From positions 124,001 through 188,000 of the IMG/VR virus record IMGVR_UViG_3300045970_000794: a stretch of DNA of 64,000 nt, one strand, 5' to 3'. Shown here one piece after another: positions 666 to 62,482 of this stretch (position 1 is its first letter; each line of letters begins with the position of its first letter). A program made the translations under genes and the position numbers. The notes under the pieces were generated by a model, which saw nothing but the letters and a program-made list of their open reading frames with translations, was not told where the DNA came from and did not search any database.

Positions 666-1571
666 TTATACATTAGTAATATCATTAAATTGTTTAGTGA
701 AATCAATAGAAGTTCTTTCTTCTCTAACCTCAAACAATGGTTTACCATTGAATTGTTCTTTGATTTCATATAAATTGTATTGTTTATAGATTTGACCTTC
801 GAAATTGTAAATAGTGTAAACACCATCTTCAAGTGATTTGGTTTGATTAGCTAATAACGCATATGCTAATGTTTCAATATCATGGTCAACTAATTCAATT
901 TCCAACATTATTGGATTGAAGAATGTATTAGTGATAATTACACTCTGACCAGCGGTTCCAATATATGGGGTCGCATTTGGTCTTACACTTGGTGATGATG
1001 ATGGTGAAACAGTACAAAACGTTAAAGTTCCATTATCATTAAATGAATATCTAGTACTAGAAATATTAGTATTTGATTGGTCGGCATTCACAGCCTCAAC
1101 TTTATTATTAGAAGTTACAATTCTAAAAAAATTATTAATTTTAACATCATCTGAATTAGCTGTTGAAAGATATTCAATACGATACCCAATTAATCCATTA
1201 TTAATAAATCGATTAACAAATTTCTGGTCAATTGTATTAATATCAAATACAATACCTTTATTATCTGGTAAATTACTTAATACACCACAATCAACAATAG
1301 TAGTTCTGATTTCAATCGGTTTTATTATTATGGTATAAATTCCTTTAAGGTTGAAATTAGCTGTTGGCAATTTCAATGTATATAAACCGCCAAATAATTC
1401 AACACTTGTATTATTTGGATTAGTAGTTTTAACTAATAAATCCTCACCATTGTATTTAGTTAGAACATTATCACCACTTTGACTTCTACTTGGTGTGAAG
1501 TGAACAAATATTTCAGCATCACTTGGTTGAATGTCGGCGGGTCTTACTGTCCCGTATGCGCCAGTTGCCAT
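666..1571 (-). CDS. Hypothetical structural protein
   Basis: 301-aa ORF tightly packed in the baseplate/virion operon. No recognisable motif. Confidence 0.5.
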   Translation of the reverse strand: MATGAYGTVRPADIQPSDAEIFVHFTPSRSQSGDNVLTKYNGEDLLVKTTNPNNTSVELFGGLYTLKLPTANFNLKGIYTIIIKPIEIRTTIVDCGVLSNLPDNKGIVFDINTIDQKFVNRFINNGLIGYRIEYLSTANSDDVKINNFFRIVTSNNKVEAVNADQSNTNISSTRYSFNDNGTLTFCTVSPSSSPSVRPNATPYIGTAGQSVIITNTFFNPIMLEIELVDHDIETLAYALLANQTKSLEDGVYTIYNFEGQIYKQYNLYEIKEQFNGKPLFEVREERTSIDFTKQFNDITNV

Positions 1572-1574
1572 ATT

Positions 1575-2519
1575 TTATAAATTATTTTTTACTACGTTAT
1601 AATATCCATTACCATATCGAACTAAATGTTCAACACTTTCAATTTCTGATAATCTTAGATGATTTTCAAGCGCACTCGTCACACCTCTATCTATAAATAC
1701 ATCAGTTTGAACTTCTGGTGAAGAAACTATTCCTAAATATATTTCTTCTTTTACAACCGCTGATAGTGTTGTATTACCTGAGTTCCAACCCTCACCAATA
1801 TATGAAATTGTTGTATTAACTTCTTCTGGCACATCAAAATCTAAACTATTCCTTAAATTAATTAAATTAGGGAAATAATTAATTATTTTATTATCACCGC
1901 TTAATGGATATGTTGTGTATTTAAACCCAGTTGTTTGATTTGGGGTTCCTATATTAGCATCAAAATTTGCTTTATTCACATATGTAATTGCAGATTGTGA
2001 TGGATTAATAGGGTTTTGTGGATGTGTAATTCTATTTCGACCATCAACTAAAATCCCCAAATAATTATTATAAACTTCAATATTAACATCAAAATTTTGA
2101 ATGTATTTATTAAGCCTATTATATGTATTGTATGCACCTAACTTAGAATCGGTAAATCCAGTTACTCGATACCCATAATTATAATAATGATTTGCTAATC
2201 TACCATCAACTCTTAAATCATCGTTAAAATTTGGTACAGTATAGCTAACACTAGTGCCATACATGAATGGAAATGTAAGTCCACTCATAGTTAAATTCTG
2301 TACTAAGTTATTATTCAAATTTGGTGAACCACCTATCGAAGCTGGAACAGCCCATGGCTCATCAACATATGGCATATCAGTAAAAATACCTAAATCATCA
2401 ATATTTTGAGTTAAAAACACATTTAAATGTATAGTCGAAGCAGTAATAGTCCCATAACTAATGTCTGGACTATGACTTTTAAGTGTTTCTAATAATATTT
2501 TTCGTTTAATTACTTCCAT
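1575..2519 (-). CDS. Hypothetical structural protein
   Basis: 314-aa ORF, overlapping start/stop with 2519..3331. Confidence 0.5.
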   Translation of the reverse strand: MEVIKRKILLETLKSHSPDISYGTITASTIHLNVFLTQNIDDLGIFTDMPYVDEPWAVPASIGGSPNLNNNLVQNLTMSGLTFPFMYGTSVSYTVPNFNDDLRVDGRLANHYYNYGYRVTGFTDSKLGAYNTYNRLNKYIQNFDVNIEVYNNYLGILVDGRNRITHPQNPINPSQSAITYVNKANFDANIGTPNQTTGFKYTTYPLSGDNKIINYFPNLINLRNSLDFDVPEEVNTTISYIGEGWNSGNTTLSAVVKEEIYLGIVSSPEVQTDVFIDRGVTSALENHLRLSEIESVEHLVRYGNGYYNVVKNNL

Positions 2520-3331
2520 TAGATTACGTTTGATTCATATAATTTAACTGTTACTTCATCTGGTGTGCTATAATCAACATTAGTTGAATATGTCTCATCA
2601 ATTGCATAATAATATCCGTCTGAATCCCTTTTTAGTAAATATTTAGTATGTAGATATTGTACTAAATCACCTAATATTATTGGACCTACCTTAGTAACTA
2701 ATTTGGTTGATTTCCCATCCTTTGCATTATTAAATTCAGCCTTCATATATAAAACTTTTGGTAATAATGGGTCTATATCGATATCATCTTTGTAATGATA
2801 AAGGTAAAACCCTTCAGCATACCCAGCTGGGTTCTTAATTGGGTTTGAGTATACAAATTTAACTGGTAAATTAAGTAAATTAGCGTAAGGGTCTTTTATA
2901 TTAACAAATAAATCCTGTACTGCAATCAAATTTTGGTCAGTTGGTATATCATTATCAAAAAATCTAAGCCTTAAAAAAGTATTTGATAGATTATTATTCC
3001 TAAATTTTAAATCATCATTAATAAATGAGTTATTAGTTGTTATATCACTAAATGTTGATATGTTAGTTGGTGTTGTTGCAGTAAAAACTAAACCATAATT
3101 AACAAATTTTAATAAATTCTGACTAGTTACACCAGAATATATTGGTAAAAACCTAACCCGTTCATTATCTACTGGTACATTTATTACATTTTTAACTTCT
3201 TTTTCAACAAAATTAGTCTTAATTAGCTCAGATTGGTCCACAGGAATGTAATCCATACTAATTGGAATGTTAATTGTTGTTGCAGTAACACCACTGAACT
3301 CAGAAAAATTTATTTTATACCTAGCAACCAT
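2519..3331 (-). CDS. Hypothetical structural protein
   Basis: 270-aa ORF with coupled overlaps to its neighbours. Confidence 0.5.
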   Translation of the reverse strand: MVARYKINFSEFSGVTATTINIPISMDYIPVDQSELIKTNFVEKEVKNVINVPVDNERVRFLPIYSGVTSQNLLKFVNYGLVFTATTPTNISTFSDITTNNSFINDDLKFRNNNLSNTFLRLRFFDNDIPTDQNLIAVQDLFVNIKDPYANLLNLPVKFVYSNPIKNPAGYAEGFYLYHYKDDIDIDPLLPKVLYMKAEFNNAKDGKSTKLVTKVGPIILGDLVQYLHTKYLLKRDSDGYYYAIDETYSTNVDYSTPDEVTVKLYESNVI

Positions 3332-5234
3332 TTGTTATTATATTATAGTTATAATTATCATCAAAAAATTTATCACCATATGGGTCTCGAGGAAATGTTG
3401 AATAATATAATCCATATTTACCGTATGGGTCTTGTCTTCTGAGTGATAAAATGTAATTTTTGTATATATAATGTGCACCGTTTAAAAATGGGTAATCAAC
3501 TAATTCACCATTAATTAAATATTGCTGACCAATATCCATGAAATCACGCCATACGAATCTGCCATCAGTAAATTCAGCGTAATCTGGTATATTAAACGTT
3601 CTTGCAACCTTCACAATTTCATTACCAATCATTTGTTCAGTCATACCAGTATTACCATATTCAACATAATTGGACCAACTTCTTAATTGAATCTTATAAT
3701 GTGGTTTATAATAGTAACCCTCTTGTCTTTGACCCATTGATATCGTTGAAGTAGTATAACCAGTCACATTAGTAAATGTAACACTTGAATTCATTGGTAT
3801 TGGTATATCTGAATTATAAGCTGGCTCACCCCATCCATTTAACGTTGAATATGTAATCGATGGTAAATAATCAATAACAGATATTGTAACTTGATTATTT
3901 GTTAAAACTCTATTATAAAGATTAAATCTATGATGAACTTCACCCAATACATTTTCAATGAAAGATTCTCGATTATATTCGACTACATCACCATAAAATA
4001 AAGTATCATTACCCAATATATCATCCTCAATTGGTGTGTGGGTCATAATTGGTGTTAAACCACCATCATGAATCCTATGAATATCAGATAAACCAAGATA
4101 ATCACCATTACCTTGCGCATCCGATTGAACATTGCTATTATATGGCATTTCAAGACCAGACTTAACATTGGTGAATATATTAGTTAATTTTGGGTCGGAT
4201 GATAAATCCGTTTTAACTATTGTTAAAAATAATTCAGTCAATGGCCTATTTCTATTATCTTTATAAGCTGAAACATCAATATCAACCGTTGTTCCAGAAC
4301 CACCATTAAATACAAATTGATATTGAGTATCATTGTATATTGTATTTGAAAATACTAATGGAAATATCTCATAATCATTACTTTCAGTTATTCTCTTTAA
4401 GATTCTAAAATAATATTCAGAATCAGCACCATTATACACTTTTTTCATCCTAGTAGCGATGAAACTAGGCATTATGAATGGTGTTGTTGATAATAATGAT
4501 TTATCTATTATGAATACATAATCAGTCATCGTACCATCTGGTAAACCGTTGTTCTTAACTGTAAAGGTTGTACCAGTTTGGGACCCGATAATACCAAAAT
4601 TAATGATTTTAACTTTATCACCCTCTTGTAACCCATGTTTTATTGGTGTATAGAACGCTAATAATGGTCTACCACCTAAGTTTACTACTTGAACATCAAC
4701 TATTTTTAAACCACCATCAACTAAAAAATGTTTTGTATCAGCTGAATAAGGGTATGTTACCATTAATTCCCAATTAGATTGGTCTCTGGTAATCATTTCA
4801 AATTTATCCTTTTTAGGATTTAATTCAACTCGATTAATCGTATTACTTTGACCAGTTAATATTTTAGGTTCATAACCATACCAACCATCCTTTTCTTTTA
4901 AATAATAATCCAATGATTCATTGTATATTAAAAGCCTTTCACCTACATCTTGCCTATCTCTAAATTCTGAATCTTGGAAGCTAGCTAAACTATCTGGACC
5001 CGTGGTATTATGTAATGTATTGTGAAATAATGTATTCACATTACCAAAAATTCTATATTTAGTTGCTTCTTGACGTTCAGTACTATATAATTCACCTTGA
5101 TTAATAATATAATTAATATCAGTATCTGGTATTAATTTATTACTATTAACCAATAGCACTTTAGTCGAAAAATCAGAATTAATCGATGTTACACTATTTG
5201 TTTTATCTCTTCTTTTGGTAAATCTAGTTTCCAT
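3321..5234 (-). CDS. Hypothetical structural (baseplate-associated) protein
   Basis: 637-aa beta-rich ORF in the virion operon. Confidence 0.5.
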   Translation of the reverse strand: METRFTKRRDKTNSVTSINSDFSTKVLLVNSNKLIPDTDINYIINQGELYSTERQEATKYRIFGNVNTLFHNTLHNTTGPDSLASFQDSEFRDRQDVGERLLIYNESLDYYLKEKDGWYGYEPKILTGQSNTINRVELNPKKDKFEMITRDQSNWELMVTYPYSADTKHFLVDGGLKIVDVQVVNLGGRPLLAFYTPIKHGLQEGDKVKIINFGIIGSQTGTTFTVKNNGLPDGTMTDYVFIIDKSLLSTTPFIMPSFIATRMKKVYNGADSEYYFRILKRITESNDYEIFPLVFSNTIYNDTQYQFVFNGGSGTTVDIDVSAYKDNRNRPLTELFLTIVKTDLSSDPKLTNIFTNVKSGLEMPYNSNVQSDAQGNGDYLGLSDIHRIHDGGLTPIMTHTPIEDDILGNDTLFYGDVVEYNRESFIENVLGEVHHRFNLYNRVLTNNQVTISVIDYLPSITYSTLNGWGEPAYNSDIPIPMNSSVTFTNVTGYTTSTISMGQRQEGYYYKPHYKIQLRSWSNYVEYGNTGMTEQMIGNEIVKVARTFNIPDYAEFTDGRFVWRDFMDIGQQYLINGELVDYPFLNGAHYIYKNYILSLRRQDPYGKYGLYYSTFPRDPYGDKFFDDNYNYNIITNGC

Positions 5235-43027: not shown

Positions 43028-45853
43028 TTAAATGTTGTCGAAGCTAGCACCAGTAGGTGTTACAACGAATTCAATGTTAATATATTCAAGAGCTCTTGTT
43101 GGTTTGATGAAAATCTTACCATTAAGTTCATTTCTGTCGATTGATTCTGGGTCATTATCTACAGTTACTCTGAAATCTACAAGACCTCTAGCACTTCTAA
43201 TGTTTTCAAGAATTGGATTTACCAAGCTCAAGAATTTATTTCTCACAACTGAGTCATTTTGGTCGAAAAGTAACCTCAATGATACAGCAGAAATAAGTTT
43301 TCTTGTTTGTAATAACAATCTTCTAACATTAATTCTATTAAGAGCTGTTTCGTTAACTTGAAGAGTTTTGTTACCCCAGATTTTAACACCTTCAGTTGCA
43401 AATGTTGCAATTGGGTTAATACGTCCTTCGTACAATGTATCTCTTTCGTCAAGTGTAAGTTTTTTACGTGCTTTAATACAGCTAACATCACCTCTTTCAA
43501 TACCAGCAACTGAGAACCATGGGAAAGCAATATTATCAGTCAATGCAATATTTCTTAATACGTCTCTTGTTGGTGGTAACCAAATGTAAACGTTATTTTC
43601 AGTATCATTAACTTGAACCCATGGCCAGTAAGTACATGAGTAATTACTATCAAAAAAGTCAGTTAAATCAGCTACAATGTCTTCAACAGTATAAAGGCTA
43701 CCATTTGACATATCTGGTGTTGTTACAACATACAATGAGTCACGTCTGTCGTTTTCAACCATGTTGATTGTATCTTCAACTAAGTTTGTGTTGTTAACAG
43801 TATCAATACCTGGTGTTGCAAATACGTTAATATTTACAGCTTCTGGGTTAGAGAATGTTAAAACACCTTCTAAATATGCGTAGTAGTCGGAAGTAATTCC
43901 ATTATCACCATTGCTACTTACATAATCAGCAAAATTATCTAATGTTGTTCCTAAAAGTCCTCTAGTACCATTAATTGTGTAAGTATTAGTATTTGTTCTA
44001 CTTCTTCTGTAAATGTCCCATCCATCATAAGCACCATAAGGAGCCATAGTGAATTTACGAGCATATACTTTTTCATAATCAGTTCCTAAAACACCTAATT
44101 CACTTCTGAATTGAGCACTTCCACATTCAAATGTGTAAGAAATTGAGTTATCATCAACAGTAACACCAGTAGCAGCAATATCCATGTGGAAACCACTAGT
44201 TAATGCAGTCCATGCTGTTCCATTTCCATCTTCAGTACCTTTATAGTTGAATAATGGTTGGTCAATACCTTCAGTATCTGAAAGTCCTAAATAGAATTTA
44301 CGTTTATTTTCGTAGATTCCATATCTTGTTTTGTATAATATTGAAGGGTCAGCAACTGAAGTATTACCATTAGTTTGATAATCTCTTACTGGAACACCAA
44401 TCATACCAGCTGGGAAATACATAGATGTATTAATATCTGGATTCATTTCGATTAAAATATAATCTGATTTTGAAGGATATTCACCATCATAAGTACCAAT
44501 TTTACGTCCAACATAGTTTGTTAACGTTGGGTCCATACTACATTTTGTGAATTTTTCAATGATACTTGGTTTTGCATCAGTATCATAGAAACTTCTAACT
44601 AAAATGTCGAATTCTTTATCATCTGGTTTAATGTTAACGATAGAAATTTTGATTTCTTGGTTAGCATGGTTACCATCAGAAATTGTAATGAATCTAAATA
44701 AACTGAATATTTGATTACCAATTACCTGTGATACGGTCCAAGGTGTTGTTGCATAAGTGTATTGTGATTTGTAGAATTGGAAATCACTACTGTAGTCAAC
44801 TAAAGATAAATTAATACCTCTAACTTTTCCGTCAGCAACAAATTTATCAAGCATTGCATCGTAAACTTCTTCAGCAAAAACAGCTGTTTGTTTATCGAAA
44901 GCTTTTGTACCTAATGCATTTGTAATATAATTTTGATTTGTATTGTCTAATGAAATAGTATATGTGAATGCGCTTTGAACTGTTGATAATCCACTTAATA
45001 CAAATTCACCACTTGGGTCTAATAATGCATTACTTGAATTAGCAGCATCAATACTTACAGTATATGAACCACCACTTAATTCGAATAATAGATTTTCATT
45101 TCCATCATAAGTTGCTCTAGAACGTAATAACGCTACAACAGTATTTTGTACGTCTGCGTATGAAGTACCAGAATATAATACAACAGTACCGCTAACACTA
45201 CCACTGACTGATGATGCATCACCACTAATCTTAACCATGTCAGTAAATAAAATACCAACAAAGGCACTAGTTGATTCATTTGGTTTATAGAAGAATGTAG
45301 TACCAGTATATCCAGAACCTAATGCTAAATTAGCCATATTAGTTATTTCAATAGCAAACTCAGTATAAGTTGATGCACTAGTATTAAATAAACTTTCAAT
45401 ACCACTGAATGTTGGAGTTGTAGTAATACCAGTAACGGTTGAACCACTAACTCTAGTATAATCAATAGTAATACCAGTTGTTGTTGTTATACCAGTTGTT
45501 GAAGTATCTAACGCACCATTTAGTGTGATACCCCATGATTTGCCAGCATCATAACCAGAAAGACCAAGCACTCTAGTTACATATAACTGATTTGTTTGGC
45601 TTAAATATGATTTAGCGATATATGGAAGTTCGTATTGTGGGAAACCAGTGTCAATGAACTTTGAGGCATTTTGCCCGCCAAAGAAAGCTTTGAATTCATC
45701 ATAGTTTGAGATGAAAATTGGTTGGAATGCTGGTCCTTTAGTAGTTTCACCAACTAAGCCCAAGGTTGTTACCCCTACTTGTCTGGTTACGAAGGTTAAG
45801 TCTTTTTCAGATGTGTAAACACCTGGACTAACGAATACTCTATTTGATGCCAT
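43028..45853 (-). CDS. Contractile tail sheath protein (T4 gp18-like)
   Basis: FVSPGVYTSEKD, LVGETTKGPAFQP, INVFATPG, YWPWVQV, PWFSVAGIERG, WGNKTL, RINVRRLL and IKPTRALEYINIEF. Confidence 0.93.
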   Translation of the reverse strand: MASNRVFVSPGVYTSEKDLTFVTRQVGVTTLGLVGETTKGPAFQPIFISNYDEFKAFFGGQNASKFIDTGFPQYELPYIAKSYLSQTNQLYVTRVLGLSGYDAGKSWGITLNGALDTSTTGITTTTGITIDYTRVSGSTVTGITTTPTFSGIESLFNTSASTYTEFAIEITNMANLALGSGYTGTTFFYKPNESTSAFVGILFTDMVKISGDASSVSGSVSGTVVLYSGTSYADVQNTVVALLRSRATYDGNENLLFELSGGSYTVSIDAANSSNALLDPSGEFVLSGLSTVQSAFTYTISLDNTNQNYITNALGTKAFDKQTAVFAEEVYDAMLDKFVADGKVRGINLSLVDYSSDFQFYKSQYTYATTPWTVSQVIGNQIFSLFRFITISDGNHANQEIKISIVNIKPDDKEFDILVRSFYDTDAKPSIIEKFTKCSMDPTLTNYVGRKIGTYDGEYPSKSDYILIEMNPDINTSMYFPAGMIGVPVRDYQTNGNTSVADPSILYKTRYGIYENKRKFYLGLSDTEGIDQPLFNYKGTEDGNGTAWTALTSGFHMDIAATGVTVDDNSISYTFECGSAQFRSELGVLGTDYEKVYARKFTMAPYGAYDGWDIYRRSRTNTNTYTINGTRGLLGTTLDNFADYVSSNGDNGITSDYYAYLEGVLTFSNPEAVNINVFATPGIDTVNNTNLVEDTINMVENDRRDSLYVVTTPDMSNGSLYTVEDIVADLTDFFDSNYSCTYWPWVQVNDTENNVYIWLPPTRDVLRNIALTDNIAFPWFSVAGIERGDVSCIKARKKLTLDERDTLYEGRINPIATFATEGVKIWGNKTLQVNETALNRINVRRLLLQTRKLISAVSLRLLFDQNDSVVRNKFLSLVNPILENIRSARGLVDFRVTVDNDPESIDRNELNGKIFIKPTRALEYINIEFVVTPTGASFDNI

Positions 45854-45890
45854 TCTTTAATTTATTATTTTGAATATTATTGTTTTTATT

Positions 45891-45898
45891 ATAAATAT
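45891..45898 (-). promoter_or_regulatory. ATATTTAT motif (candidate phage late promoter) upstream of the sheath gene; representative of about 15 copies
   Basis: The same 8-mer lies about 15-70 nt upstream of many starts (see findings). Confidence 0.5.
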
Positions 45899-45974
45899 AT
45901 CCTCAATTAAGAAAGAACATATTTAATCATTCGGATTATTCATTTTTAAATGTATTTTATATCCGCAATATTAA

Positions 45975-46289
45975 TTAGCAATCAATGGCATTACTCCATT
46001 CACTCATTAATTTAATTTGTGAGTATGCATAAGCTCTCAAATCACTAGTTAAATTCATATTCATAGGAACTTCAAATCTAATATTTTCTTGTATAATATT
46101 ATCTTTATTATCATCCCTTTTTAATTTATCAACGTAACCAAGTAAAACAACTTCAAATCCATCCATAAACATAGGTGCCATGAATAAATTACTTGTATAT
46201 ACTCTATTAATGTGTGTACTTATTGATGCAATTTTCCAATAAGTTGCAACAGCTCCTGTTGCCAATTCTTTTGTTAATTCTAATCCCAT
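45975..46289 (-). CDS. Hypothetical protein (tail-fibre-associated, possibly a chaperone)
   Basis: 104 aa, last gene of the fibre cluster. Confidence 0.45.
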   Translation of the reverse strand: MGLELTKELATGAVATYWKIASISTHINRVYTSNLFMAPMFMDGFEVVLLGYVDKLKRDDNKDNIIQENIRFEVPMNMNLTSDLRAYAYSQIKLMSEWSNAIDC

Positions 46290-46330
46290 AATTTTAAATA
46301 TTAATTAATATATTATTTTATTTAAAACAT

Positions 46331-46621
46331 TTATACACCAGTAGAATCAACTTCCTTCCAATTACTACCATCCCATCTTTTTAGTTTTTTAGCGACAAAA
46401 CTACCTGTATTCACCATTAATTTCGCTTTAATCCAACCATCACCATTCCATCTTTTTAATATTCCAAAATATACTAATGGTGTTGAACCAAAAAACCAAT
46501 CATTCATCATGGTTCTTCTTTGAGTGTTATTATTAGACCAGAAAAATCCAGTACTCAACACCGTAGTTTTATTTACCCAACTTGATTTAAATGGAAATCT
46601 TCCTCTACCTGTTATCGCCAT
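46331..46621 (-). CDS. Small hypothetical fibre-associated protein
   Basis: 96 aa with two KRW(N/D)GxxW motifs. Confidence 0.45.
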   Translation of the reverse strand: MAITGRGRFPFKSSWVNKTTVLSTGFFWSNNNTQRRTMMNDWFFGSTPLVYFGILKRWNGDGWIKAKLMVNTGSFVAKKLKRWDGSNWKEVDSTGV

Positions 46622-46627
46622 AATAAA

Positions 46628-47431
46628 TTAGCCTTGTGTAAATATTATTTCTGAATTTATTGGTGTTGTTGTTGTCGTACTAGGTTGAAAAACCAAAAAT
46701 GGTACTGAATCATCAAATATTTCTGGAAATCCACCAGTTAACGCATCCACAGATGATGATAAATAAGCACCTACAATATCAACTGATGCAATTACTCTAT
46801 AAGCTACTAATGATATTGAACCACTAGTCATTGTTGTATTATGTGTCCATGTTTGTATTGATTGTACCCCAACATCCCCAGCTTGTAAACCCATTTGATA
46901 AAATGTACCTTGAATTGATGACGCAACCACTGTTAATAAACCAGCACCAGTCCTACCACTTACACCTAAACTATTTGTATAAGACATTGATAATGTTGGT
47001 GTACCAGCACCAAGGTTGGCACTTGCTTCCATTGCAATATAAATACCTGTACCACTTATTGAACCATTCATATCTCTAGGTGGTAAAGCAACTGAATTTA
47101 CGTTTTGAGCTGTTGTAGTGGTAACAGCCAAACCCGAATTATGCCATAATCTATCACATAATAATAATTTACCAGCTTGAGCTGCTTGACCTGTCATTCT
47201 AGCTAAGTATGTGTGTCCAGCAACTGGATTTGTGAATGGAATTTGACCAGCATATGTTGTTAATGCAGCACCAGTTACACCTGGAGCTGGTGCAACTGCT
47301 GCACCTGGAGCTCCAACTTGATAAATCGTTGAATGTGGTCTACCAGCAACCAATGTACCAGTAACCCCTTTTGTTATATATCTTGGTGGTTGCATTCCAG
47401 CTATCGCACCATCGAGTGTTGTTATTGCCAT
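46628..47431 (-). CDS. Hypothetical virion/fibre-associated protein
   Basis: 267 aa, Gly/Ala/Thr-rich, own ATATTTAT motif. Confidence 0.5.
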   Translation of the reverse strand: MAITTLDGAIAGMQPPRYITKGVTGTLVAGRPHSTIYQVGAPGAAVAPAPGVTGAALTTYAGQIPFTNPVAGHTYLARMTGQAAQAGKLLLCDRLWHNSGLAVTTTTAQNVNSVALPPRDMNGSISGTGIYIAMEASANLGAGTPTLSMSYTNSLGVSGRTGAGLLTVVASSIQGTFYQMGLQAGDVGVQSIQTWTHNTTMTSGSISLVAYRVIASVDIVGAYLSSSVDALTGGFPEIFDDSVPFLVFQPSTTTTTPINSEIIFTQG

Positions 47432-55387: not shown

Positions 55388-56434
55388 TTATAATATTATT
55401 CCTGTTAATCTAAATTTTCCTGTTATTTGTTGATTTTTAGTAAAATCAATTCTTAATGTCTGACCAGCATTAATTTCAAAAGGAAATGCTGTTACAACAT
55501 TGTCAATTCTATATATTGGGTTCGTAATTCCTTGTATTGGTACGAATGTATTAAATAATGCATGATAATTATGAATCATTTCAAAATAATTTTGAGCAAA
55601 TGGTTTACAAACAATATTCAAGTTAATTGTAGCTTGAGCTTCACATACAGTTGTTTTAACAATTGGTTTAGTTGGTTCACATAATTCGACCATTACCATT
55701 GTTCTATCAATTGATGGAACTACTTTAAAATCTTCTTCATTAATTATGTAGCCCAAAAGTTTCATTTCAAACATTTGAACATAAAATCTTCTATTTTCAA
55801 AATCATCAATTGGACTTTCATCACCAATACTTTCTAAATGAACTGGCATTGGATGACCATTAGGTGAAATATAAAATTGTCTTGATTGAAAAGTTTCTTG
55901 TATTTTAACGTTAAATTTATTCAATTCACGCATTCTATTGCAAAATAACCTTACTTCATATGTCATATCAACGGATGTTGGCTGTGGCACTCTATAAGTA
56001 TCCACACCAGCTCGTCCACCGTTCCATGTCGGAACTTTCATGTATGCATATGTGTGATGACCTGGTATATTCCATAAACTTTTTTGATTTGTACCCACTT
56101 GAACATCTGGTTTTCTAACTACTGTAATAAAAGGCATTTGCATATCCTTAAATTCATCAGTAAATTTCCAAGTTCTAGCAAATTCAGCCCATCTTTGAAT
56201 GGTTAAGAATATTACTGGGACTTTTTCACCATCAATTACTATTTGTAAATCTTCATTAACGAATTCAATAAATGTTTTATCCAAATCTTCATACATAACA
56301 CCTCTAGGAAGATAAGTACCACCTTTGGCAATATCTTCAGTAACCATTTCTTCCCTTCTTCTTGGTCCGAAATGTTCTGGATATAATTTCAAATCCTTAC
56401 GAAAACCCTTAGAAAATCCTTTTGGTAATCCCAT
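55388..56434 (-). CDS. Tail completion / sheath stabiliser (T4 gp15-like)
   Basis: YEDLDKTFIEF, QRWAEF, MPFITVVR and PTSVDMTYEVRLF. Position next to the neck genes. Confidence 0.6.
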   Translation of the reverse strand: MGLPKGFSKGFRKDLKLYPEHFGPRRREEMVTEDIAKGGTYLPRGVMYEDLDKTFIEFVNEDLQIVIDGEKVPVIFLTIQRWAEFARTWKFTDEFKDMQMPFITVVRKPDVQVGTNQKSLWNIPGHHTYAYMKVPTWNGGRAGVDTYRVPQPTSVDMTYEVRLFCNRMRELNKFNVKIQETFQSRQFYISPNGHPMPVHLESIGDESPIDDFENRRFYVQMFEMKLLGYIINEEDFKVVPSIDRTMVMVELCEPTKPIVKTTVCEAQATINLNIVCKPFAQNYFEMIHNYHALFNTFVPIQGITNPIYRIDNVVTAFPFEINAGQTLRIDFTKNQQITGKFRLTGIIL

Positions 56435-56435
56435 A

Positions 56436-57056
56436 TCACATTATTTTTTTACCTTTAACCATATTATCTTTAGCCCATAATGGTTGTAAATTACTTAATG
56501 CATTTACAACACTAGGTGGTGTATCGGCTGAAAAGCTACAAACTGGTATTTTATGGTCAATATGCCATTCACCATAATTATTCCATGACATACCCTCAAC
56601 AAATAAAGATTCTAAATGCTCTTTTAATTGGTGTGGTGAATATCCTAGTAAATCAATGGTATGACCACTTTTTTTCTGACCTAACCGCCTCAATGATAAA
56701 TATAATAAACCTCTCCATTTATCACCTATTGTTTGTTTTCGACCTTTTTTTCGTTCTTTATCATATTGTTTAAGCTTAGCATCATTTTTAATCCTATATT
56801 CCTTTTGCCATTTAGAAATTATTTCAGCATTTTCAATTGTATATGTTTTTTTCTTAATCGATATTATTTCTTTATTAGATTCACGATATATTTTAACCAC
56901 TGAACAAATTTTGTCTTTATTAATAATATAACGCTGCCCATCAATTTCTTTTTTACATGTTTTACAATATGTTGAATATCCATCTTTAGATGCTGAACAT
57001 TTATTAAAATCTTCAATTGGTTTATCAATACTACACTTATAACATATTTTAACCAT
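56436..57056 (-). mobile_element. HNH homing endonuclease (probable start MVKICY at 57056)
   Basis: N-terminal CYKC...KDGYSTYCKTC zinc ribbon. WHIDHKIP...NLQPLWAKDN HNH core. Confidence 0.8.
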
Positions 57057-57057
57057 T

Positions 57058-57836
57058 TTATAATCCCTCAAATTCTATTTTATATTTCCATAAATATCCA
57101 CCAGCTGTATTACGTTTTCCAGATAATACCGAATTTATATGTTTATGTATTTTTTTAATTTCACAAACCGATTTCCATTCTTTAATTATTTCACCATCTA
57201 ATGATAATTGAAGAACTGATTTTGGCCTTTGTTTTTCGTGTTTATTTTTAACTAAATAAACATCACGCTTTAATAATTCATCAGATTTATAACGCCAAAT
57301 AAACCCACCAGCACTACTTCTTTTTTTATTAACGACTAAATTTATATTTTTAATATTAAAATTAATTTTAACATCATTAACCGATTCCCATTCTTTAATA
57401 AAATTACCATTCAAATCATATTGGATTACTGAGTCAATTATTTTTGATTTTTTAAAATAGTCAATATTTTTTGGTGTTTTACCTTTTTTTGTTTTTGACA
57501 TTTTATTTTTAGTTTAATCACTTAATTTAACACCTAATGACCCACCATCACCACCATTTGTTAAATTTTTTAATTCAAAACCCCATGTTTTGAATTGATT
57601 TATCCAGTATATCTCCCAAAATCCCCATTCCAAATTTGGTACAATATCAATTATTTCAATTATTGGTGTTTCGTTTCGATTTATTAACGATTTAATCCAA
57701 GCATCTCGTTTAGTTAGTTTTTTTTTGTTTTAGCGTCAAAAATATGACGATATAATCTCTGTTTTAAATTATTTGTTTTACCAATATATTTAACACCAAA
57801 ACTATCACTTAAACTATATATAAATACTGTATCCAT
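57058..57836 (-). pseudogene. Inactivated GIY-YIG homing endonuclease with NUMOD3/NUMOD1 domains
   Basis: ATG at 57836 gives MDTVFIYSLSD..KYIGKTNNLKQRLYRH. A 1-nt frameshift occurs in the A9 run (57718-57726). The next frame gives EIYWINQFKTWGFELKNLTNGG, then an in-frame TAA (57514-57516), then the 147-aa NUMOD1-repeat ORF 57058..57501. Confidence 0.8.
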
Positions 57837-57839
57837 ATT

Positions 57840-58364
57840 TTATTCAGCTGAAAATTCTATTTTATCAACAGGAGCGCAGATTACAGTTCTAAATGCACCT
57901 TCAAACCCCATTATTGTATGTTTATTATCAAAATGTTTTATACCATCATTAACAACACTGAAAAATCTAAGTTCAGTTTCGGTTATTGGGTATCCAATGT
58001 AATCACCATAAGATAAATCAACTTCTAATTCAGTTAATTGTTCTTCATAGATTCCAAATGTTAATTGTCCATCTTGAATGTATCTTAAACTACCAGAATC
58101 TTTACCATATACAGCATTTTCTGGTTCCGCTATGATTGGTACTACTTTTAATTCAACAGGTGTTTTAAATCTGATATCTTTTTTACCAGCTTCACCATAT
58201 AATGAATCAGTTTCACTCAAACCCCTATCAACTTGATAAAGTACCACAACAAAATTACCATCACCTTCAATTGCTTCCCTACCTAAAGATACCTCAAGTT
58301 CAAAATCCTCCCTAGAATACCATTTATTTATCCTAGTTATAGGCATTTTTCTACTATTTCCCAT
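57840..58364 (-). CDS. Neck/head completion protein (T4 gp14-like)
   Basis: VVLYQVD...SLYGEA..IRFKTPVEL, YIQDGQLTFGIY and DLSYGDYIGY. Confidence 0.55.
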   Translation of the reverse strand: MGNSRKMPITRINKWYSREDFELEVSLGREAIEGDGNFVVVLYQVDRGLSETDSLYGEAGKKDIRFKTPVELKVVPIIAEPENAVYGKDSGSLRYIQDGQLTFGIYEEQLTELEVDLSYGDYIGYPITETELRFFSVVNDGIKHFDNKHTIMGFEGAFRTVICAPVDKIEFSAE

Positions 58365-59130
58365 GATTTTTAACGTATTTATGTATTATTTTATTTGAGC
58401 AACCATATATCTCCCCAATTTGAACTAAATTTAATCCATTTTGTTTATATTCAGTTATTTGATTAACATCTAAATTATATTTATTAGACTTAGGTTTATA
58501 TATCTCAAAACGCCTAAGATTATTATTTATAACATCCTTTGAACAATTAAAATGTTTTGCTATCTCAGTTATTTTAAAGTTTTTATTTAAAAATAAATCT
58601 CTTAATTCATCCCCATTTATTTTATATTTAAAATTACCATTATTTTCATATTTATGAATTCCAAGTAATTTAACTTTTTCACTTCGTTGTTTTAACACTT
58701 TTTTCGATAATGATTTACCGTGCATCGGGTTGTTTTTACCAATATTAATTTTCTTCATATATTCTTTGGTTTCTTCGCTATGTTTTAAACCTAAACACCC
58801 TTCACCACCTTTGGTTATATTATAACCAATAGATTTTTCAGTTGAATTATATTTTTGAATCCAATATTTTTCTTTATTATCTAATATTTCTTTAGTATTA
58901 CAATGTTCAAGAATTTCCTTAATAAAATTATTTTTACCGTATTTTTTAATAGCTAATTTTATTATTTTACCAGAACCAATATAATTAGGATTATTTTTAG
59001 AATCTTGACCAATATAAATTTTACCATTGATTAGGTTAGTTGTTTTATAAACAACCATATCAAGTTCAAAATCTTCACGAGAATAGAACTTATTAATTCG
59101 AGTAATTGGTATCTTTCTATTTGCTGCCAT
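58354..59130 (-). mobile_element. GIY-YIG homing endonuclease fused in frame to a duplicate of the neck gene's first 24 codons
   Basis: MAANRKIPITRINKFYSREDFELD, then MVVYKTTNLINGKIYIGQ (own ATG at 59058), EKYWI..YN and NUMOD3 HSEETKEYM. Confidence 0.85.
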
Positions 59131-59219
59131 AATTTTTCTTTTTAGATAAATATTTATGTATTCATAAATAAGCCAGTAAGTATTGATTTTTTATTAATAT
59201 TTAGTAAATTTAGTTCACT

Positions 59220-61076
59220 ATGATAAATATAGATGATATAAAAAATCGGTCATCATTGACATTATTAGAAGGTTATAGTGGTAATAACCCATATATTCGT
59301 AAATTGAAATGGGATTATGTACAGCGTAAAACTAAATTAACTGATAATCAAATGAAATATGTAATTGATAATCACGACAAAGAGCCAATTAAAATGGATA
59401 AAGTCGTGAGGATATCACTATTACTAGGTGAAGAGTTACAAAAACAAACAAATGTTTCATTCGTACCAGAGAAAATATTAATTGAATATTTATTGGCTGA
59501 TACTGAAAAAGCTTTCCACATAATTGGTAAATTAAAGAAAAATCAAAAGGAATCCAGAATGTACTGGATACCTAAAACTCAAATATTTGATGACATATAT
59601 TTTGATGAAATTGACATTGAAGTTGATTTTGACAAATATAAAGCTCTTGATTCACTACATAGAGAACCATTCGAACATCAAAAAACGGGTGTTAAATTTC
59701 TATTAAGTCGAAATGGGTGTATTTTAGCTGATGATATGGGTCTTGCCAAAACATGGCAAGCAATTGTTGCGGCTTTGGAGTCTAATTGTATGAAAATATT
59801 AGTAGTTTGTCCATCTTCAGTTAAAATTAATTGGCAACGTGAAATTAACTGTTTTTGTGATGATACTGTAATTGTTAGTGGTAAAAAATGGAAATCATCT
59901 AGATTCACAATTATTAACTATGATATTCTTAAAAATTTCCATACAATTAAAGAACCTAAAAAATCAGAAGAAGAAGTTACTGTTGAGGTTAAGACTCAAT
60001 TAATTAAAGGTGATTTTGATTTAGTTATTATCGATGAAGCCCATTACCTTAAAAACCCAAAAAGTATTAGAGGTAAGATTATGACTGATTTATGTATTAA
60101 ACATAATATTGAAAAAGTGTGGTTATTATCTGGTACTCCAATTACAAATCGACCTATGGATTATTATAACCTTTTAAAGCTAATTAAGAGCCCTATAACA
60201 GACAATTGGGTCTTTTATGCAAAAAGGTATTGCGATGGGAAAAAGTTCTTTAAAACGCTTAAAACTGGTCAAAGAAAGCAAATATGGCTTACAAATGGTT
60301 CTTCTAACTTAGATGAGTTGGCTCAGAAAACTAGAAACATTATGTTAAGGCGTAAAAAGGAAGAAGTATTGGATATGCCAGAAAAGACTAGAATTCCAGT
60401 CTTCCATGAGTTAGATAAAGCTGGATGGGCTGAATATGATAATCTTTGGGATGAATATTTAGAACAAAGGAAACTTGACGGTAAAACAGTTAATCTACAA
60501 CGAGATTTAACTGAAACTATTTTATTGAGACGATTCATTGCTAAACAATCAATACAACATACTATTGATTTAGCTAATAGTGCGATTGAGCAAGAACAAA
60601 AAGTAATTATATTCACAACATTTACTGATGAATTATTGGAATTGCAAGAATATTTTGGAAAAGAATGTGTTGTTCACTACGGTAAAATAAATGACCGACA
60701 AAAGCAATATGCTGTTGATAAATTTCAAACTGACCCTAATATTAAAGTGTTTATTGGTAACGTAATATCGGCTGGTGTTGGTATTACCTTGACAGCTGCT
60801 AATATAGTTATATTTAATTCATATGATTGGACACCTGGTAATAATGACCAATGTGAAGACCGTGCTTATCGTATTGGTCAAAATAATAATGTTACAGTAT
60901 ATTATCATTTATTTATGAGAACCATATCAACAGTGATGTGGAAAATATTATATGAGAAAAGAAACATAATCTCAATCATCATGAGTGAACAGAATTGTCC
61001 AGAAGATATTGCGATTGATATTATATTAAAAGATGAATTAACTAATGGAACAGAAAGTAATTGTATATCTGATTAA
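59220..61076 (+). CDS. SNF2/SWI2-family helicase
   Basis: HQKTGVKF, LADDMGLAKT, VVCPSSVKINW, IIDEAH, LSGTPITNRP, GVGITLT and QCEDRAYRIGQ. Confidence 0.88.
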   Translation: MINIDDIKNRSSLTLLEGYSGNNPYIRKLKWDYVQRKTKLTDNQMKYVIDNHDKEPIKMDKVVRISLLLGEELQKQTNVSFVPEKILIEYLLADTEKAFHIIGKLKKNQKESRMYWIPKTQIFDDIYFDEIDIEVDFDKYKALDSLHREPFEHQKTGVKFLLSRNGCILADDMGLAKTWQAIVAALESNCMKILVVCPSSVKINWQREINCFCDDTVIVSGKKWKSSRFTIINYDILKNFHTIKEPKKSEEEVTVEVKTQLIKGDFDLVIIDEAHYLKNPKSIRGKIMTDLCIKHNIEKVWLLSGTPITNRPMDYYNLLKLIKSPITDNWVFYAKRYCDGKKFFKTLKTGQRKQIWLTNGSSNLDELAQKTRNIMLRRKKEEVLDMPEKTRIPVFHELDKAGWAEYDNLWDEYLEQRKLDGKTVNLQRDLTETILLRRFIAKQSIQHTIDLANSAIEQEQKVIIFTTFTDELLELQEYFGKECVVHYGKINDRQKQYAVDKFQTDPNIKVFIGNVISAGVGITLTAANIVIFNSYDWTPGNNDQCEDRAYRIGQNNNVTVYYHLFMRTISTVMWKILYEKRNIISIIMSEQNCPEDIAIDIILKDELTNGTESNCISD

Positions 61077-61677: not shown

Positions 61678-61737
61678 ATGGCAGCAACACAAGCAGAAAA
61701 AGATAGATTATTCAGTATATCAAATCCAATTTTTTAA
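61678..61737 (+). pseudogene. Orphaned 5' end of the neck gene (MAATQAEKDRLFS...)
   Basis: Matches MAASEIEKTRLF at 62725 at 8 of 12 residues. Similarity ends at the endonuclease stop codon (61712-61714). Confidence 0.65.
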
Positions 61738-62482
61738 CAATATTTTCATTGTATTTTATTTCGACTAGTGTAATATTATTTTTATTACAATATTTTCGTT
61801 TAATTTCATCACTCTCAGTTGTTAACTTAAATGCATTCTCACCAAAAAGTTTGCATGGTCTATAATGTTGTTCGCCTTGATATTCAATACATGTATTATA
61901 TTCTGGAATATAAAAGTCAAATGGTAATAGATTAATTCGCTTGCAATCATCAAATTTATGTTGTGGAATGAAATTAATATTGTGTTTATTCAAATAATCT
62001 CTAATTGTTTTTTCACCATTAGATTCAGAACACATTGGGCATCCACGACCTTTTTTATGGTGATGTGGTATCTGTGTAAAATCACCATGTATTGGACATG
62101 TGATGATTATTTTAGTCGTAGAATTAACATATATAACTTTTGAATAGTTATAAAAACCATTATGTATTTTTGATAATTCATTAATATATGATTCGGTCGT
62201 TATTCTTGGTATTTTTAATTTGTATGCCTTTTCTTTAATGTCTTTAGCATCTCTTCTTAATTTTTCCCCACAATATTTACTACCAAAATTACTATAGTTT
62301 TCTTTTAAAAATAAAATTTCATCAGTACCCCAAACATTTAAAATATTTAATCCTAATTTATTTGCTTTAACACGTATTGCATTTTTATTTCTATCTAAAA
62401 ACGATGTACATCCAGCTACACCGTTAATCGGGTAGTTTTTGATTAATATATCAATTTCTTCATTAGTCCAATATGTGTTCAT
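61712..62482 (-). mobile_element. Homing-endonuclease-like protein: helical repeats, DUF723-like zinc ribbon and PD-(D/E)xK/DUF559-type domain
   Basis: WTNEEIDIL repeats, CPIHGDF...GCPMC and LPFDFYIPEYNTCIEYQGEQHY. Confidence 0.75.

Follow-up and report, generated by a model that had tools for sequence, protein, structure and literature searches.

We identified a GIY-YIG homing endonuclease gene lodged within the first ~26 codons of a conserved phage gene (here gene X), in which the native start of X serves as the in-frame leader of the nuclease open reading frame (ORF), and a foreign or re-coded copy of that start downstream of the nuclease keeps X whole. Related nucleases are flanked by similar gene-start duplications at five or more other phage genes. 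The analyzed window is a 64,000-nt stretch (bases 124001-188000) of a single 362,102-bp contig with 30% G+C, which appears to derive from a jumbo phage from pond metagenomes. The cleavage site, immunity of the restored allele, and translation of the fusion are inferred rather than demonstrated, but comparison with about 90 related loci supports this model, in which we have fairly high confidence. The following features are referred to below:

59146..59157 (no strand assigned), conserved 12-bp palindrome ATAAATATTTAT in the spacer between the divergent SNF2 gene and X, 15 nt upstream of the stump ATG, marking the native upstream region of X and possibly a promoter or operator
59059..59130 (minus strand), stump, i.e., the first 24 codons of the resident gene, now the in-frame leader of the nuclease ORF
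58354..59058 (minus strand), body of the GIY-YIG homing endonuclease, from its clade-typical start (Met25 of the ORF) to the stop
58354..58364 (minus strand), overlap of the nuclease stop with the start of X (ATGGGAAATAG)
58275..58364 (minus strand), replacement start of X (codons 1-30), carrying W15, L27, and AGG Arg codons at R11, R18, and R29
57840..58364 (minus strand), gene X (174 aa), first gene of a long minus-strand structural block and possibly a neck or connector protein
59060..59073 (minus strand), 14-nt exact repeat, copy in the stump (codons 20-24)
58294..58307 (minus strand), 14-nt exact repeat, copy in the replacement start

The GIY-YIG ORF (58354..59130; 258 aa) starts with MAANRKIPITRINKFYSREDFELD, and the next ORF, X, starts with MGNSRKMPITRINKWYSREDFELE. 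In the first 24 codons of the two ORFs, 18 residues are identical, of which exactly 8 are encoded by different synonymous codons (K6, P8, I9, R11, I12, K14, R18, and E19), and 53 of 72 nt are identical. The 14-nt repeat (plus strand TCAAGTTCAAAATC) occurs only at the two positions listed above in the window. This similarity is not due to chance, as a tblastn search of X against the whole 362-kb genome recovered the upstream copy with an E value of 3.8e-7. In a genome-wide scan of 494 ORF starts, the pair ranked third, the other high scorers being tandem paralogues and a possibly tRNA-like stretch. Codon 25 of the nuclease ORF is an ATG followed by VVYKTTNLINGKIYIGQ, which is where this nuclease clade normally starts. 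The nuclease stop (TAG) lies inside X codons 3-4 in another frame, giving an 11-nt overlap, and the same layout was observed in six other element-bearing loci (L016, L050, L071, L111, L114, and L117; L numbers denote the loci compared). The arrangement is not an assembly artifact, since contigs from two pond-metagenome runs (which may be the source sample) cover it at 100% identity, with one contig spanning 56738-60229. Among these assembled contigs, no element-free variant of the same strain was found at this site.

The nuclease matched PHROG 314 (homing endonuclease) with an E value of 1.2e-32 over residues 26-230 and Pfam NUMOD3 with an E value of 3.5e-7, whereas the match to Pfam GIY-YIG (PF01541; E value of 3.4e-4) was just below its cutoff (21.3 bits against 22.6). 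PF19835 (SegE_GIY-YIG) was hit with an E value of 6e-4. The VVY..YIG motif, the E of KEKYWI, and GYN are visible in the sequence, and several helix-turn-helix families gave weak hits at residues 182-255. A total of 1937 homologues were found at E values of <=1e-20. X belongs to a highly conserved family, with homologues of 170-176 aa (62-81% identity), many of them from contigs of about 360 kb. In GenBank phages, a tblastn search of X gave no hit and a blastn search of the 7-kb region matched only nuclease fragments; the clade is not among isolated phages. The original prediction labeled X a gp14-like neck gene, but this label has only weak support. X had no Pfam, PHROG, or PDB sequence hit, and none of 32 PF11649 or related connector family members hit it at E values of <=1. 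Its AF2 model is poor (pLDDT of 58; pTM of 0.50); the top Foldseek PDB hits are neck or connector chains of phages P1, T4 (gp13/gp14), phiKZ, and Chi, although with E values of 3e-3 to 2e-2 and TM scores of 0.38-0.52. Clusters neighboring X in the ESM Atlas have 11% PF11649 members, and the block headed by X contains the tail sheath gene (43028-45853). A neck/connector-like structural role is plausible but not established, and the essentiality of X is inferred from its conservation.

Element-free relatives showed a divergent SNF2 helicase gene, an 88-131-nt spacer, and then X, with neither a nuclease nor a duplication. Of 79 non-self IMG/VR loci, about 70 have this layout (spacer of 95-131 nt, with X followed by a 345-348-aa gene), and the four closest relatives (74-81% aa identity) also have this empty layout. 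Six of the 79 loci carry a related nuclease at this exact place, each with an upstream partial copy of the X start, and further occupied loci (L111, L114, L115, L117, L139, and L156) were found with the nuclease as the query. The only duplication-bearing loci without an intact nuclease are decayed elements, namely, L018, in which a 12-codon stump is fused to the last ~33 nuclease codons and followed by X, and L044, which retains a footprint of about 60 nt. Direct repeats and short duplications are common in AT-rich phage genomes, and a tandem duplication could in principle have arisen independently (e.g., by replication slippage) before a nuclease gene landed between the copies by chance. This scenario is very unlikely given that none of the roughly 70 element-free loci has the duplication, that the same architecture recurs at unrelated genes always with this nuclease clade, and that nuclease and downstream start move as one unit (see below).

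Several lines of evidence indicate that the upstream copy is the lineage-native one and that the downstream copy travels with the nuclease. The core of the spacer motif ((A)AATATTTAT) is present about 12-24 nt upstream of the X start in most element-free loci, whereas in occupied loci it lies upstream of the stump only. This motif (core AAATATTTAT) was not enriched genome-wide (10 found, 19 expected) and is thus locus-specific rather than a genome-wide late promoter. The stump shares 42-43 of 51 nt (codons 8-24) with the closest element-free relatives (L104-L107), which are its top matches and share with it the codons AAG TTC TAT TCx CGT GAA GAT and the residues NKFYS; the 100 nt upstream also match their spacer. 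The downstream copy departs from these relatives (F15W, Arg CGT->AGG at R18 and R29, Glu GAA->GAG, and M27L), and X of the window is least like its relatives in codons 8-27 (60-67%, against 74-79% overall). Codons 8-15 of the downstream copy instead best match the X starts of other element-bearing loci (24/24 for L016 and 22/24 for L071 and L050), although whole X is only 68-71% identical to theirs. The W15+L27 combination occurs in 7 of 9 element-bearing alleles (including L016), compared with 1 of 58 element-free alleles; L071 and L056 carry the element without the full signature. Occupied loci also share excess identity in codons 8-30 relative to the rest of X (permutation p = 0.0004), although they are not phylogenetically independent. 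Codons 16-24 of the replacement start in the window encode the residues of its own lineage (YSREDFELE) with different codons, which requires either a donor from the same sublineage or later conversion. An alternative reading of the same linear order is that a cassette with a foreign stump at its 5' end was inserted just upstream of the X start codon, leaving the downstream copy as the untouched resident start. Cassettes at other genes do carry old decayed stump fragments at their left end (L016, L068, and L084), but the affinities of the two copies described above, and the L149/L155 pair described below, make this reading very unlikely.

The original prediction placed the insertion at about codon 24 and proposed that the nuclease may carry an N-terminal tag from the interrupted protein. 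Among database homologues with the same C-terminal domain (type 1), 25 of 31 have an in-frame leader composed of X residues 1-10 to 1-28, the commonest form having 26 residues ending in ..LEIS directly before the nuclease Met. Native X has a nearly invariant Met27 (ATGGG) at exactly that place, so that in these 26-codon stumps the nuclease ATG(GT) stands where X has codon 27, where the traveling allele has Leu. The usual junction is after codon 26, and the stump in the window is two codons shorter. The 14-nt repeat, which the original prediction took to mark the junction, is a stretch in which the two copies are identical to each other but differ by 2 nt or more from all four close relatives; we interpret it as conversion between the copies or a shared recipient origin, not as a target-site duplication. 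It remains possible, though we consider it less likely, that the nuclease is translated from its own Met25 without a tag, the stump being an untranslated or separately translated remnant. Met25 is conserved in all clade members, some loci have an out-of-frame stump (L062) or a stump stop overlapping the nuclease ATG (L114; ATATGA), and type-2 and other cassettes carry their own leader. Furthermore, this genome uses no Shine-Dalgarno motifs (12 of 266 ORFs, equal to background), so internal starts cannot be judged from sequence. Against this possibility, the 25 in-frame stumps contain no stop across leaders of 10-28 codons and many X lineages, and no stop separates the stump from the nuclease in the window. 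The stump is renewed at each homing event, however, and its open frame alone does not prove selection for a fusion protein; by our count, 4 of 6 independent length changes kept the frame (binomial p of about 0.1).

To assess generality, we scanned 85 loci of this nuclease clade for similarity between the DNA before the nuclease and the gene after it. Gene-start duplications were identified at five further targets: a UvsW-like gene (46 codons), a gene starting MY.DRNF (29 codons), an IF3-like gene (about 57 codons), ThyA (about 33 codons), and a gene starting MNE.KIKGKIS (14 codons). One other target, starting MY[KQ]AIGYDKK (L087-L099), showed no duplication, and its leader GYGLDIYNKGVIM is the conserved cassette leader (GATATTTATAA..ATG) rather than a stump. 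Six other members of the clade in the same genome also lacked a start duplication. A decisive example is the pair L149 and L155, which are 98-100% identical from about 65 nt before the nuclease ATG to about codon 62 of the IF3-like gene, while their left flanks are 50-65% and their right flanks 69-82% identical. Each keeps its own diverged stump, which ends at the equivalent position. This shows that the nuclease plus the replacement start is the mobile unit and that the duplicated length equals the distance from the start codon to the insertion point. Recent transfer is thus shown for a sister element and not for the element in the window, as no close relative of this particular nuclease (>67% aa identity) was found in another background in IMG/VR or JGI metagenome contigs.

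These data fit double-strand-break repair after a cut near the insertion point. In the inferred pathway, the enzyme cuts an element-free X allele near codon 26/27, the left end keeps the recipient's codons 1-26 and pairs with the donor stump, the right end pairs with donor X beyond the break, and repair copies the nuclease and the donor's X start into the gap, with co-conversion of a short tract to the right (L27 and the AGG at R29 in the window; about 4 codons in L149/L155). The restored gene again contains the insertion-site sequence, and any immunity must therefore come from the changes that bracket it (W15 to L27, a span of about 39 nt); the replacement start and the short converted tract (F15W, M27L, and synonymous changes) are inferred, from association only, to make the restored gene a poor substrate. 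We considered whether the nuclease and downstream start might instead lie within a self-splicing intron or an intein-like insert, since several homologues are named group I intron endonucleases by JGI and GIY-YIG enzymes such as I-TevI are intron encoded. This is very improbable: no Rfam family, including group I introns, matched 56300-59400 on either strand at E values of <=1, the folding energy of both junction RNAs is ordinary, and the insert ends in a stop followed by a complete, conserved X start with its own ATG, whereas an intein would need one continuous frame into X. A sigma-70 promoter and terminator scan was at background level, with no terminator between the nuclease and X. We therefore propose that ribosomes start at the native ATG of X, translate the stump plus nuclease, and probably reinitiate at the overlapping X start. 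A more speculative possibility is that this layout is a translational addiction circuit, in which any nonsense or frameshift mutation in the selfish gene would starve the structural gene and the nuclease ORF would stay intact far longer than ordinary homing endonuclease genes do. The stump, placed between the upstream region and the nuclease as the uncut-type left half of the presumed homing site, might also act as an operator for autorepression. If so, these elements would define a general gene-start replacement class of phage homing elements, with portable coding-sequence homology arms that let them home into phages whose intergenic DNA has diverged.

The closest known analogues are mobile endonuclease ORFs of fungal mitochondria (Allomyces macrogynus atp6; Glomus atp6, atp9, cox2, and nad3), in which an endonuclease ORF inside a conserved gene brings a foreign copy of the gene end that is fused to the resident gene, and the displaced native end survives as a diverged duplicate (PMC3630166). 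There, too, the copies differ mostly at synonymous sites and the ORF can be in phase with the gene, but those elements replace the 3' end and sit downstream of the gene body, and the ORFs are mostly LAGLIDADG (GIY-YIG for atp9). In the phage element described here, the 5' end including the start codon is replaced, and the displaced native start becomes the nuclease's own leader. The free-standing seg/mob endonucleases of phage T4 share GIY-YIG enzymes with NUMOD/HTH DNA-binding parts, promoterless cassettes that ride on host transcription, overlaps with neighboring ORFs suggesting translational coupling, embedded expression signals for essential neighbors that favor retention, and co-conversion of flanks (PMC2988022). 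The T4 elements lie between genes or split a gene in two (mobE in nrdA and mobA in gene 39/60), and we found no report of a duplicated or replaced gene start in phages, although most subscription-journal papers were outside our search and this is not proof of absence. For I-TevI, which is intron encoded, a sequence resembling the homing site lies between the promoter and the nuclease ORF and mediates autorepression (PMC2988022); the stump occupies the same position, but its binding by the present enzyme is pure conjecture. Homing endonuclease genes are thought to survive inside genes only when hidden in introns or inteins, or to sit between genes, and carrying a spare gene start represents a third solution in phages. 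It would explain how a nuclease can target highly conserved coding sequence without killing its carrier, and it creates chimeric genes whose first 15-70 codons have a different history from the rest, with fused ORFs and short orphan stumps that are easily misread in annotation and phylogeny. Recurrence at ThyA, IF3-like, and UvsW-like genes suggests a widespread, overlooked class in environmental phages.

In addition to the elements described above, a second subtype with a NUMOD3-repeat C terminus (L068, L084, L085, L139, and L156) joins X after codon 14. This subtype carries a decayed older stump and a promoter-like ATATTTAT leader, and its 3' end, AAAGGAGTTAAATATGTCTAA, supplies a new ATG and new codons MSK[SP]IV for X. 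L042 is a near-identical empty site for L084.

In addition to the nuclease at its 5' end, gene X is flanked on its 3' side by a 1.44-kb block of endonuclease remnants (window 56413-57851), which includes the following three features:
57714-57836, a 40-aa GIY-YIG N-terminal fragment
57058-57501, a NUMOD-type ORF
56436-57071, an EndoVII/HNH-like ORF
In relatives, X is followed immediately by the 345-348-aa gene. A near-identical contig from a freshwater-sediment run skips 56413-57851 and has 23 other nucleotides in its place. Another homing-endonuclease-like gene was identified nearby (window 61712-62482; PHROG 559 HNH endonuclease, E 1.6e-53), and six further members of the GIY-YIG clade are located elsewhere in the genome (e.g., at genome positions 2452-2850 and 60010-60768). 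The same nuclease clade, together with gene-start duplications, is found in genes of other environmental phages, including a UvsW-like gene (locus L171), an unnamed gene (L160), an IF3-like gene (L149/L155), ThyA (L164/L165), and a further unnamed gene (L143/L144). Of these, the restored gene in L171 appears to carry a frameshift about 60 codons in. Three tandem paralogous genes outside the window (genome positions 44269-46637), which share the N-terminus MKIFNLYE and were detected by the duplication scan, are unrelated to endonucleases.

The SNF2 helicase gene next to X carries, in many relatives, an in-frame insert of about 370 aa after residue 177, at the GLGK|T Walker A motif (i.e., L005, positions 1243-4194, and loci L009, L010, L011, L032, L037, L045, L055, L062, L069, and L074). 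This insert has LAGLIDADG-like motifs and ends in HN, and it thus resembles an intein. The SNF2 gene of the window (59220-61076) lacks this insert. In L056, an occupied X locus, an IS200/IS605-like element (positions 1525-3400), comprising an ORF that resembles a Y1 transposase on visual inspection and a large ORF on the other strand, is inserted between the SNF2 gene and the stump (i.e., the upstream copy of the X start).

Shine-Dalgarno-like 4-mers were found upstream of only 12 of 266 long ORFs across the whole genome, which is the same as background (4.4%). Translation in this phage/host pair seems to be SD-independent, which would fit a Bacteroidota-like host. The divergent SNF2/X spacer contains a perfect 12-bp palindrome, ATAAATATTTAT (window 59146-59157), which is conserved in the equivalent spacer of relatives, across phages whose proteins are only 55-70% identical. 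It is not a genome-wide motif. A related ATATTTAT box precedes the nuclease ATG in cassettes that have their own leader.
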